From Phallusia mammillata (taxonomy: Eukaryota): a DNA stretch of 64,000 bases. Positions 3,186 to 57,937 of the stretch are shown here, piece by piece. The stretch spans positions 6,014,001 through 6,078,000 of the forward strand of contig OZ281497.1 of NCBI GenBank assembly GCA_965637545.1, written 5' to 3'. Within the stretch, counting starts at the first letter, position 1, and every line of letters begins with the position of its first letter. The notes under the pieces were generated by a model that saw nothing but the letters and a program-made list of their open reading frames with translations, was not told the DNA's origin and did not search any database. A program made the translations under genes and the position numbers.

Positions 3186-3278
3186 ATGTTGAATTTGTGA
3201 TGTGTTTGACTTGTTGTCTTGGAATAACACAAGCACAAACAGATTTGGTTAATACAACACATAACCTACTAAATACCC
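3186..3278 (+). CDS. Signal-peptide first exon of gene A, with an apparent 1-nt frameshift after the homologous ATG
   Basis: Homologous to 35136-35199 ([18 protein letters not shown]). The ATG at 3186 reads MLNL*. The in-frame ATG at 3200 gives [26 protein letters not shown] with a phase-1 donor at 3279 (gtaag). Confidence 0.65.
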
Positions 3279-56100: not shown

Positions 56101-57937
56101 GCGGATATAATAAGTTTCAATAATCGATTTTGAGTAACTTATTTCATTGCATCACGAAAGACACAGACTGATTTAAGAAAACTAAAAGTTTAAGTTTAAG
56201 ATGTAAGTTCAGAAAAACACTTTTCTATTTGAATAAGATACTGACGATGCTGTAATAGCGAAATATATATATCTTTAAAACGACTAAGCGTTTTTCTGAA
56301 CTTACATCCATCGCTTTATAAGGCTTTTTAGTCTTCATCCACCAAGCAACGGACTGGATGATTCGAGCTTTAAGTTTCAATTAAGAGTTTGAGTTTAATA
56401 TATAATTGTATTCCTATTTTGATACCGTTTCTTTTTGATCTCGCTTTGGCTCTATATGCACTTGGCATAGGACCTCAAATTATTTACCGATTAAACTTAC
56501 AACATAATATATGTATTTTGCTACGTATGGTCAATACAAACATAGTATCACATTTGCTTAACTTTCGTTTGCTTGACTTGTTATTTGAAGATTGGTCAAC
56601 ATCGATTTTAAGACATCCTTTATGACGTTGTGATTTATGCGATCAACTTTAAAAAGTAACACTTTCCTAATTTGGGTTACATTTGTTGAAAAACAAAACT
56701 GATTCGATAGCACCTGTTACGCAAAACATACTCTGTTTGCACATAATGAAAATATGAAGTTTTTTTTATTTAACTTATCAATCATTAACGAATTCTATAC
56801 GAAACGGACTATATGCCAAATGTCCGACATTCCATATTTTTAAAGGGTGACTCTGGTGGACCACTTATCTGTCTGTTTGGCGAAACAGCCTGGTATCAAG
56901 TGGGCGTGACCTCGTACGGAAATGGGTGTGCTGTTGCTGGATCTCCTGGTGTTTACACAAGAGTTTCTTCCTTCTACTACTGGATCATGAACAGTATGTT
57001 GGTCGTTTTTGTTTCATGAACAAACATGTTTGTTTCCGTTCCTAATGCAATGCAAAAAAGGATTTAATGATATTCTATAACTTTTCTATGAAGGTTTTAC
57101 TTCTGCTAAAAAAAGTTTCAACGTTTGTTTACATTTGGCAGGAATTAGCCATGTGTGAATATGCAGTTTTGCTGACTCAGCAAACTTCCAAGTTCTGTCT
57201 ATTTATTCCTCTGGTTGTTTTAAATTTCTCCTCGTTTTTAATGGTAGCGTTTGTATTTAATTTGAATCGTTTACTTTGCAGATATAAACTCGACATTGCC
57301 TTCTCCGCCACCCTCGAGCCCGCCAGCAATGCCAGCCACAAACCCAGCTACAAACTCATCCAATACAATCCAAACTACAACTAATGAGGCAAACACAACA
57401 ACTGGCAACCAATCCAATTGTACCACAACTTGTGGTGGGTAACAAAGTTTTGTTAAAATATTTCGTGTTTGTTGCAATAAAAATTTCAAAATTTATCGAG
57501 GTTTTAAACTAAAAATACATTAGGAGCACGTTTCAGACACTTTAAAGGAGTTCTCAGACACTTCCATTTGTGTAAATAAAAAGCGACCTAAAATCCCTCA
57601 CATCAAAACCTAAATTCCCTCACATCAGAATTGTTTTTGCAGTGCCCTTTCACTTAAATATTAATAATTTTTATTTCGCTTTATTTTTTATTATTCGCCT
57701 AATGCTATCATCCAATTGAAATGTATTTTTTACAATCCTGGTGAAAGTAATAAACCGCATCCACAGTATGAAAGAAATGCGGTATTTTCAAATAAACATA
57801 TACTCGGCAGTGTTCACAGTGCAAAACATATAAATAAAAACTTACATATTATTTCATTTTCAGGTGGTGAGATGGTTCGAATTCATTTTGTCTTATTGCT
57901 TATCGCACTTCTTGTTACTGTTACTGGGTTGAACTAA
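35136..57937 (+). CDS. Gene B: GPI-type multi-domain serine polyprotease. Order: CUB-LDLa-SP-CUB-LDLa-SP-CUB-LDLa-SPH-CUB-CUB-LDLa-SP-stalk-GPI
   Basis: 50 hand-assembled in-phase exons, total 5640 nt (1879 aa plus TAA at 57935-57937). Two introns use GC donors. Confidence 0.85.
36313..36662 (+). mobile_element. tRNA-carrying mobile element (single, partly decayed copy)
   Basis: Collinear with the reverse complement of 62858-63175. tRNA-like part at 36441-36501. A 26-bp direct repeat CCAGTATGAATAT(T/G)TTCATCTTATCT lies at both ends. Confidence 0.8.
36670..38346 (+). CDS. Gene B CUB 1 and LDLa 1
   Basis: Exons 36670-36794, 37422-37511, 37848-37989 and 38236-38346. Confidence 0.93.
37009..37293. 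mobile_element. piggyBac-type MITE
   Basis: About 40-bp imperfect TIR CACCATACCTCACGGGAAACCCAC.../...GTGGGTCTCCCTTAAGGTATGGTG, flanked by CTAA/TTAA. Absent from the paralogous intron of gene A. Confidence 0.65.
37556..37645. mobile_element. Tiny Tc1/mariner-type MITE (paralog of 5228-5309)
   Basis: TA-CAGTAAACC...GGTTTACTG-TA. Confidence 0.7.
38609..43009 (+). CDS. Gene B protease 1 (Gly189, Ser216), microexon and divergent CUB 2
   Basis: Exons 38609-38670, 39038-39195 (DPR|IVGG, TAAHC), 39564-39656, 39935-40089, 40646-40803, 40872-41013 (GDSGGP...ASWS), 41561-41584, 41720-41841, 42488-42571 and 42886-43009. Confidence 0.93.
43253..47733 (+). CDS. Gene B LDLa 2, protease 2 (Gly189), microexon, divergent CUB 3 and LDLa 3
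   Basis: Exons 43253-43363, 43789-43850, 43992-44152, 44501-44590, 44853-45007, 45250-45407, 45793-45934, 46136-46159, 46296-46414, 46573-46656, 46812-46935 and 47620-47733. The triad is intact. Confidence 0.93.
46999..47483. mobile_element. hAT-superfamily MITE
   Basis: Perfect 14-bp TIR CAGGGGTCTCAAAC/GTTTGAGACCCCTG and perfect 8-bp TSD ATTTAGAA. Confidence 0.95.
48124..49894 (+). CDS. Gene B protease homolog (inactive SPH)
   Basis: Exons 48124-48185, 48262-48413 (SSASC), 48508-48746, 49273-49424 and 49750-49894 (GDQGGP), followed by a GC donor (gcaagt). Confidence 0.92.
49042..49245. mobile_element. hAT-type MITE (paralog of 10861-11226)
   Basis: CAGTGTTTCTCAACC...GAGAACCACTG with TSD CTCTAACT/CTGTAACT. 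Confidence 0.7.
50303..53342 (+). CDS. Gene B microexon, CUB 4, Pro/Thr linkers, CUB 5 and LDLa 4
   Basis: Exons 50303-50329, 50661-50776, 51162-51251, 51687-51819, 52094-52150, 52248-52274, 52344-52459, 52629-52718, 52947-53079 (GC donor) and 53232-53342. Confidence 0.9.
53553..56993 (+). CDS. Gene B terminal trypsin-type protease (Asp189)
   Basis: Exons 53553-53614, 54106-54260 (DPR|IVGG, TAAHC), 54724-54819, 55073-55230 (FDIALL), 55607-55752 (GIDTCQ) and 56846-56993 (GDSGGP). Confidence 0.93.
56235..56275 (+). ncRNA. Minimal type I hammerhead ribozyme candidate
   Basis: Stem I AAGATA/TATCTT (6 bp), core CTGACGA-T, stem II GCT(G)/(T)AGC, GAAA, palindromic ATATAT stem III and an AUA cleavage triplet. 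Confidence 0.65.
57282..57937 (+). CDS. Gene B Ser/Thr/Pro stalk and GPI-type C-terminus
   Basis: Exons 57282-57434 ([14 protein letters not shown]...CTTTC; donor gtgggt inferred from phase) and 57864-57937 ([24 protein letters not shown]). Confidence 0.78.

Follow-up and report, generated by a model that had tools for sequence, protein, structure and literature searches.

A tandem cluster of CUB-LDLa-S1 mosaic polyprotease genes in the ascidian Phallusia mammillata

Introduction

Several S1 serine protease domains can be joined on one polypeptide, and such polyproteases, complete with dead domains and self-processing, have already been described (PMC1435904, PMC9265791). Polyserase-1 is membrane-bound, and its separate domains are made by post-translational processing; polyserase-2 contains three S1 domains, one of which is described as the catalytically active domain, and both polyserase-2 and polyserase-3 are soluble and carry no extra modules (PMC1435904). 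HrOvochymase is processed at Arg sites and acts on an egg-coat precursor, and no Ser/Thr stalk or hydrophobic tail appears in its description (PMC9265791). Here, we analyze a 64,000-nucleotide stretch of the Phallusia mammillata genome (contig OZ281497.1, positions 6,014,001 to 6,078,000 of the forward strand), hereafter the window. The window belongs to a tandem cluster of genes for mosaic polyproteases, in which CUB, LDLa (LDL-receptor class A), a chymotrypsinogen-type propeptide, and S1 recur as a repeated series. Two genes, A and B, lie within the window, and a paralogue, gene C, begins in it and continues beyond its end.

By their exon chains, A and B would resemble the polyserases in having several S1 domains per polypeptide. 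Polyserase-1 has type II membrane topology, however: its anchor is N-terminal, a single LDLa and three S1 domains follow, and CUB is absent. A reading of A and B as polyserase-1/TMPRSS9 was rejected on topology, since their signal peptide is N-terminal, their hydrophobic tail is C-terminal, and CUB and LDLa precede each S1 domain. Ovochymase-1, ovochymase-2, and HrOvochymase are closer in overall plan: they too are secreted-pathway chains with two or three S1 and several CUB domains, often with one domain that lacks the catalytic triad. The identity of A to ovochymase-1/2 is 26-28% over about 900 amino acids, but the module order differs. Local profiles read an ovochymase (AmOVCH1) as S1-CUB-CUB-S1-CUB-CUB-CUB-S1, without LDLa, whereas A, B, and C are of the form (CUB-LDLa-S1)n, and an ovochymase assignment was rejected on this ground. 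Prostasin and testisin share with A and B a C-terminal hydrophobic signal without a cytoplasmic part, but they have a single S1 domain and neither CUB nor LDLa; their attachment by glycosylphosphatidylinositol (GPI) has been shown by experiment.

Materials and Methods

The window is AT-rich animal DNA (GC about 36%, zero N) from an assembly of 240 Mb. That assembly contains an intronless gene for mitochondrial HSP70 whose product is 100% identical to a Phallusia mammillata UniProt entry, with other ascidians as the next best matches. Exon chains were built by hand from splice-site scoring, reading phase, and paralogue consistency, and module orders were assigned with local domain profiles. For the cluster map, exon boundaries were transferred by blastn across 164 kb, comprising the window and ten further loci. 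All positions are window coordinates; those with a minus sign lie upstream of the window, and those with a plus sign lie beyond its end.

Results

The exon chains of genes A and B each contain four S1 domains

Six-frame translation of the plus strand yields many short exons of the trypsin-type protease, CUB, and LDLa classes, and single exons exceed the curated Pfam cut-offs for Trypsin, CUB, and Ldl_recept_a. Exons of the three S1 classes defined below (T1, T2, and T3) score 29-62 bits against PF00089, for which the cut-off is 20.6, and matches of the S1 domains to PDB entries have E values of 1e-45 to 1e-57. The motif PR↓(I/V)VGG opens eight exons, at 6834, 10034, 19193, 23726, 39038, 43992, 48262, and 54106. 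Gene A (3200-26775, plus strand) has 51 exons encoding 2203 amino acids; all its introns are GT-AG, its frame is free of stops, and its order is CUB-LDLa-S1-CUB-LDLa-S1-CUB-CUB-CUB-LDLa-S1-CUB-LDLa-S1. Gene B (35136-57937, plus strand), with 46 exons and 1849 amino acids, reads CUB-LDLa-S1-CUB-LDLa-S1-CUB-LDLa-S1-CUB-CUB-LDLa-S1. Two of its donors are GC, both of the perfect G↓GCAAGT form (49894 and 53079). GC-AG introns stand at the matching positions of gene C (+70561 and +73971), where gene A has GT, and a deposited gene C protein shows that both are spliced. Thus, exon chains and Pfam matches bear out what an earlier note on this DNA had read in the letters: four S1 domains in each of A and B, each of them preceded by CUB/LDLa, a Cys-containing linker, and its own PR↓(I/V)VGG site. 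Table 1 lists the components.

The same note had sorted the S1 domains into an active Gly189 class, an inactive class, and an active Asp189 class, and an alignment of all S1 domains yields the same three groups. T1 has His57/Asp102/Ser195 together with Gly189-Pro190, Gly216 (Ser in one B copy), and Gly226. T3 combines the full triad with Asp189/Gly216/Gly226. T2 has Ser57 and either Glu or Gln at 195 and keeps Asp102, Asp194, all cysteines, and its own PR↓IVGG site. The triad is therefore complete in T1, T1', T3, and T3' and broken in T2. Judged by these residues, T1 is chymotrypsin-like and T3 is trypsin-like, and T2, because of Ser57 and Glu/Gln195, is classed as a dead pseudo-protease.

The linker is a chymotrypsinogen-type propeptide

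Linker plus S1 has exactly 10 Cys in 8/8 modules, and the Cys of the linker always lies 15 residues ahead of the cleavage site. Linker plus T1 aligns end to end with its best match, bovine chymotrypsinogen A (1acb_E, E=3e-57), placing the linker Cys on Cys1 and the cut on Arg15↓Ile16, with Cys122 matched. Prostasin is also among the close solved relatives of T1; the nearest solved relatives of T3 are factor XI, TMPRSS2, and plasmin(ogen). In chymotrypsinogen, Cys1 pairs with Cys122, and the propeptide remains attached after activation. Since the linker Cys aligns with Cys1, whose partner is Cys122, cleavage is predicted to nick the chain and leave the domain in place. Release of the domains by cleavage at the Arg sites, which the earlier note had envisaged, is thus unlikely, as each domain would stay tethered by its disulfide.

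The T1 zymogen differs from chymotrypsinogen A in being one module of a long mosaic with a tryptic domain on the same chain. It also differs at residue 189, which is Gly (Ser in the deposited gene C allele) and is followed by Pro190. T1, itself non-tryptic and requiring a cut after Arg, shares its chain with tryptic T3, and the two together match the classical trypsin-to-chymotrypsinogen logic.

Gene C has a deposited three-protease product

Gene C (60348 to +78434, plus strand) is laid out as CUB-LDLa-T1-CUB-LDLa-T2-CUB-CUB-LDLa-T3-stalk-tail and has three proteases; one further copy lies beyond it on the minus strand. A word search from a Clavelina protein found a deposited Phallusia mammillata UniProt entry, "Suppressor of tumorigenicity 14 protein-like" (P0260, 1267 amino acids), which maps exon by exon onto gene C (its later exons) and runs through T1, T2, and T3 in a single frame. 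On this match, we identify P0260 as the product of gene C. It bears out 36 exon junction choices of the hand-built models and adds three small gene C exons that the hand-built model lacked. Homologues of gene C's two mini-exons were sought in A and B, and none was found. P0260 ends short of the hydrophobic tail. It is the sole transcript-type support for the family. Several S1 domains per chain are seen at the level of exon chains in A and B and at the level of a deposited spliced protein in paralogue C.

The genome and P0260 differ at T1 residue 189 of gene C (region of +66381), which is Gly in the former (GGVGPCH) and Ser in the latter (GGVSPCH); the two are apparently alleles that differ at the base of the S1 pocket. 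The donor of the gene C linker-3 exon (+74987) has changed from GT to AT (ACATGG↓ATAAGA versus GTATGA in B and A). P0260 nonetheless joins this exon normally to the next one, and the change may be polymorphic, or the sequenced individual may carry a disabling mutation.

Colinear relatives occur in other ascidians

The earlier note did not recognise the layout of A and B, but the (CUB-LDLa-S1)n design is not new: it is shared by Styela clava XP_039274225.2, Clavelina lepadiformis CAK8680120.1, and Phallusia P0260. A profile search with the 127-amino-acid T2 exon found no close relative, the top matches being fish multi-trypsin proteins that scored by repeat number. The same search missed P0260, though its T2 matches the gene A region at about 61% over 156 amino acids (tblastn); thus, absence from that search is not evidence of novelty. 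Sequences from its distant matches led to the colinear ascidian relatives.

Orthologues colinear with the Phallusia genes, in Styela and Clavelina, show 35-41% identity over >800 amino acids and have a like module order, stalk, and tail. Residues 41-837 of gene A align with Clavelina P0038 at 41% over 839 amino acids and with Styela at 33% over 850. The Styela protein (XP_039274225.2, "TMPRSS9-like") reads CUB x3-LDLa-S1-CUB-LDLa-S1-CUB-LDLa-S1, preceded by a signal peptide and followed by a Ser/Thr stalk and a hydrophobic end. The Clavelina protein (CAK8680120.1) likewise has a signal peptide; it contains two units, both with Asp189 in the S1 domain, a Cys-rich module that appears Ly6/uPAR-like when read by eye, and a tail read as a GPI-type signal. 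A further Clavelina entry of 1455 amino acids, also "TMPRSS9-like," belongs to the family, and an unnamed environmental sequence of 1436 amino acids has three units. Among Ciona savignyi fragments (H2Y820/H2Y821), an Asp189 domain is paired with a Gly189-Pro190 domain (H2Y821). These ascidian proteins resemble A and B in their CUB-LDLa-propeptide-S1 repeats and in their mix of active and dead domains, but they have two or three S1 domains where A and B have four. Their names are automatic, none has been functionally described, and our literature search found no paper on the ascidian (CUB-LDLa-S1)n family.

A Ser/Thr stalk precedes a GPI-type tail

The stalk and the hydrophobic tail without a cytoplasmic part that the earlier note had reported are present in both chains: A and B end in Ser/Thr-rich exons followed by a hydrophobic tail with only 3-4 residues beyond it. 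Across all tails, 1-4 residues follow a hydrophobic core of about 13 or more, and the small residues ahead of it are possible omega sites. Read by eye and by hydropathy, the B tail runs C-G-G, then EMVRIH, then the hydrophobic end; the tail read alongside it runs N-S-A, then DMNRSRT, then the hydrophobic end. Stalk and terminal hydrophobic segment are common to A, B, C, Styela (...LLCQLLLFGLFN), and Clavelina (...ALLLLLGFVFAIFLSLY). Because this pattern agrees with the usual rules and is found again in the Styela and Clavelina proteins, the chains are probably GPI-anchored.

The stalk exons of gene A contain 27-nucleotide tandem repeats (VPSTTGSST-type units), with 4 copies at 21666-21932 and 9 copies at 26008-26409; the length of the mucin-like stalk therefore differs between the two duplicated exons. 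At the other end of the chain, gene B has two signal exons of different types, 0.5 kb apart, which may be alternative first exons. Gene C has the first type only and gene A the second only.

A proposed activation scheme for the putatively tethered zymogens

We favor, with moderate confidence, the view that the cluster encodes mosaic tethered polyproteases whose tryptic activator would be either T3 or an outside enzyme and which would end up as nicked arrays held together by disulfides. Each chain would be a multi-zymogen anchored in the outer leaflet of the membrane, and a cut at Arg15↓Ile16 would switch on each domain. T1 is unable to cut after Arg and would thus depend on an activator of the tryptic kind. 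The economical candidate would be T3, either in cis or from an adjacent chain, and an outside protease could serve instead. That T3 activates the chymotrypsin-like domains is plausible. After cleavage, a Cys1-Cys122-type disulfide would hold each domain, giving a nicked, tethered multi-enzyme. Other dead S1 domains serve as binding modules, and T2 is probably a binding or regulatory pseudo-protease that may change conformation upon cleavage. We infer the activation order, the GPI anchoring, and any biological role.

Several points weigh against this view. T3 is a putative cutter of the Arg sites, and the assignment of the tails as GPI signals comes from simple rules. The dead domain of Styela is the third, not the second. 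In a tree of S1 domains, Phallusia T1, T2, and T3 form three deep clades, and long branches blur their orthology to the Styela, Clavelina, and Ciona domains; given this and the Styela class order, the division of labour among T1, T2, and T3 may be specific to Phallusia. The start exon of gene A is damaged. None of the deposited proteins matches A or B, and in a search of RNA runs, only two DNA-like runs contain the locus, and 12 small putative RNA runs gave no word match. With no RNA run covering A or B, the term "gene" rests on open frames, splice phases, selection, and the transcript of paralogue C.

A serious contender, though one that we hold to be somewhat doubtful, does away with an internal cascade: an outside convertase or trypsin-like enzyme would cut the Arg sites, and T3 and T1 would act in parallel on external substrates, such as proteins of the egg coat or matrix. 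The Pro-Arg↓Ile sites resemble those of dedicated upstream activators of the factor XI type. Clavelina has Asp189 in both domains and Styela a different class order, so a fixed internal hierarchy is not conserved, and the HrOvochymase precedent is one of action on an external substrate, the egg-coat precursor (PMC9265791). On the other hand, T3 itself carries a PR↓(I/V)VGG site, as would suit auto-activation of the kind seen in many membrane serine proteases, and Phallusia shares with Ciona savignyi (H2Y821) the pairing of a tryptic with a non-tryptic zymogen on one chain.

Where gene A begins

The earlier note took A for a four-protease gene. Its open 51-exon chain supports that claim, but its signal exon is damaged and upstream units read in frame into A, so that its four-protease status is uncertain. 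A 1-bp deletion, common to the signal exons of A and of the upstream unit U3, puts the original ATG out of frame with a stop after four codons, and only an internal Met remains in frame. Upstream of A lie three partial units, U1-U3, each CUB-LDLa-T1-CUB-LDLa-T2-CUB-Ser/Thr (U1 has four CUB-Ser/Thr repeats); all three lack T3, stalk, and tail. Upstream of A, the signal exon is intact only in the copy at -48280. The donor of the U3 Ser/Thr exon (2475) is in phase 1 and can splice in frame to exon 2 of A at 4683.

These arrangements raise the prospect, which we consider doubtful yet with an appreciable chance of being right, that gene A is the 3' third of a ~75-kb unit (-48280 to 26775, about 132 exons, about 5460 amino acids) running through U1-U3. 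Its ten S1 domains would comprise four chymotrypsin-like, four dead, and two trypsin-like ones. From U1 to exon 2 of A (-48265 to 4807), 83 exons can be read through in a single frame without meeting a stop, their introns all being GT-AG, and all Ser/Thr exons end in phase 1, the phase in which exon 2 of A starts. The absence of T3, stalk, and tail from U1-U3 fits such a unit, as does the state of the signal exons: that of U2 has a separate 1-bp deletion leading to a stop ahead of the donor, and those of U3 and A share the deletion that puts the first ATG out of frame. Between U2 and U3, there are 0 indels in 2844 exon bases versus 20 in 11951 intron bases (P=0.009) and 2 in the 92-base signal exon (P=0.011), and both lineages show an excess of synonymous changes (13/27, P=0.003 together).

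Other points speak against such a unit. U3 and A retain an in-frame internal Met and a short hydrophobic stretch, a possible weak signal peptide. The synonymous excess may reflect gene conversion with functional copies, signs of which are the likeness of the 3' half of a further unit, U4, to U1 and the clustering of changes at codons 340-346. At about 1% divergence, the copies are so young that their intact frames say little, and an assembly gap lies directly upstream of U1. The RNA runs searched gave no transcript support. When four runs were mapped on positions 1-6000 of the window, DNA cover was full, the two putative RNA runs touched only the repeats at 4564-4628 and 5250-5286, and no read joint was found at 2475/4683 or 3278/4683. 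These two intronic stretches reach a summed contig depth of up to about 120,000 in the DNA runs and are thus high-copy repeats, not expression. The fuller claim of a single, still-growing ~75-kb gene for a membrane-tethered protein with ten S1, 18 CUB, and 10 LDLa domains, in which a 15-kb unit was duplicated in tandem recently and the duplicated signal exons were selectively disabled so that each copy reads on into the next, strikes us as unlikely.

Recent duplication under selective constraint

The ancestral form has three proteases, as in gene C and the Styela orthologue, and the fourth in A and B is a recent internal tandem duplication. It arose in A by a 4.5-kb duplication of CUB-LDLa-T3 (module 4 versus module 3, 97% protein identity) and in B by a 5-kb duplication of CUB-LDLa-T1 (module 1' versus module 1, 85% protein identity). 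The ratio of nonsynonymous to synonymous substitution rates (dN/dS) among A, B, and C is 0.13-0.31 for all module types, dead T2 included. Between T3 and T3' of A, 18 changes are synonymous and 8 nonsynonymous (P=7e-7), an excess indicating that both copies are kept by selection, and dN/dS between T1 and T1' of B is 0.31. We conclude that this is a real, lineage-specific polyprotease family under selection, to which Phallusia has recently added the forms with four proteases and, possibly, a gene with ten.

It is improbable, in our estimate, that the extra domains are not used together, either because duplicated cassettes are spliced as alternatives so that three proteases are kept or because A and B are young unexpressed copies. 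The cassettes concerned (T3/T3' in A, T1/T1' in B, and U1-U4) are all flanked by phase-1 introns, whose skipping preserves the frame; the sole deposited Phallusia family member has three S1 domains; and the GT-to-AT donor of paralogue C shows that copies can decay. Constraint on both T3 and T3', the dN/dS of 0.31 for T1/T1', and the absence of stops and frameshifts from about 95 exons argue otherwise. An assembly artefact as the source of the duplicates is unlikely, as the copies differ by 1-15%, the window has no N, and gaps in the mapped region occur only outside it, at -49495 and +80590.

The cluster extends well beyond the window: the contig carries no fewer than ten exons of the T2 type in a span of about 280 kb. 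A lone LDLa exon of the T3-module type (31394-31500) in the 7.8 kb separating A and B is probably a relic of a lost module. Upstream, an inverted partial copy on the minus strand (-53854 to -49819; CUB, LDLa, linker, T1, and some of the following CUB) is turned toward U1, with an assembly gap of 200 N between them (-49495 to -49296), representing a head-to-head duplication or a scaffolding issue.

Table 1. Components of genes A, B, and C and of the adjoining unit U3 in the window
Feature	Position	Strand	Components and remarks
U3 last CUB	739-854, 1625-1714, 1915-2044	+	Ser/Thr exon 2407-2475
A signal-peptide exon	3200-3278	+	damaged
A module 1	4683-8472	+	CUB 4683-5569, LDLa 5782-5892, linker 6166-6227, S1 T1 6834-8472 (triad intact, Gly189-Pro190)
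A module 2	8763-11857	+	CUB 8763-9356, LDLa 9516-9629, linker 9841-9902, dead S1 T2 10034-11857 (Ser57, Glu195)
A spacer	12788-17364	+	CUB 12788-13989, Ser/Thr 14532-14600, CUB 15351-16897, Ser/Thr 17290-17364; junctions phase 1 throughout
A module 3	17476-21909	+	CUB 17476-18351, LDLa 18519-18632, linker 18918-18979, S1 T3 19193-21485 (Asp189)
A chimeric Ser/Thr exon	21637-21909	+	3' of T3
A module 4	22023-25840	+	CUB 22023-22876, LDLa 23052-23165, linker 23451-23512, S1 T3' 23726-25840 (Asp189)
A mucin-like Ser/Thr stalk exon	25991-26461	+	with 27-nucleotide repeats
A tail exon	26687-26775	+	GPI-signal-like chain end
B signal-peptide exon, first type (MFTFVICLVCCVGTTLTQ...)	34624-34699	+	intact, phase-1 donor
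B signal-peptide exon, second type	35136-35199	+	intact, phase-1 donor
B module 1	36670-41013	+	CUB 36670-37989, LDLa 38236-38346, linker 38609-38670, T1 39038-41013
B module 1'	41720-45934	+	CUB 41720-43009, LDLa 43253-43363, linker 43789-43850, T1' 43992-45934
B dead module	46296-49894	+	CUB 46296-46935, LDLa 47620-47733, linker 48124-48185, T2 48262-49894 (Ser57, Gln195)
B CUB	50661-51819	+	
B Ser/Thr exon	52094-52150	+	
B CUB	52344-53079	+	
B last protease module	to 56993	+	LDLa 53232-53342, linker 53553-53614, T3 54106-56993 (Asp189)
B stalk exon	57282-57434	+	
B tail exon	57864-57937	+	GPI-signal-like chain end
C start within the window	60348-64000	+	signal exon 60348-60423, CUB exons 62647-62771, 63623-63712

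Discussion

The cluster introduces no new principle: polyproteases, dead S1 domains, self-processing at Arg sites, and S1 proteases with GPI anchors were all known before, and other ascidians have orthologues that are annotated already. What it shows is the growth of genes module by module through very recent tandem duplication, and the apparent disabling of internal signal-peptide exons offers a rare view of how a mosaic protein lengthens. Speculatively, duplication this fast and this local would be in keeping with a function in reproduction or defence. If the chains are made as predicted, trypsin-like and chymotrypsinogen-like zymogens and a conserved dead domain would sit together on one surface-tethered molecule, which, if true, would make the family a compact natural model for the wiring of protease cascades and pseudo-proteases.

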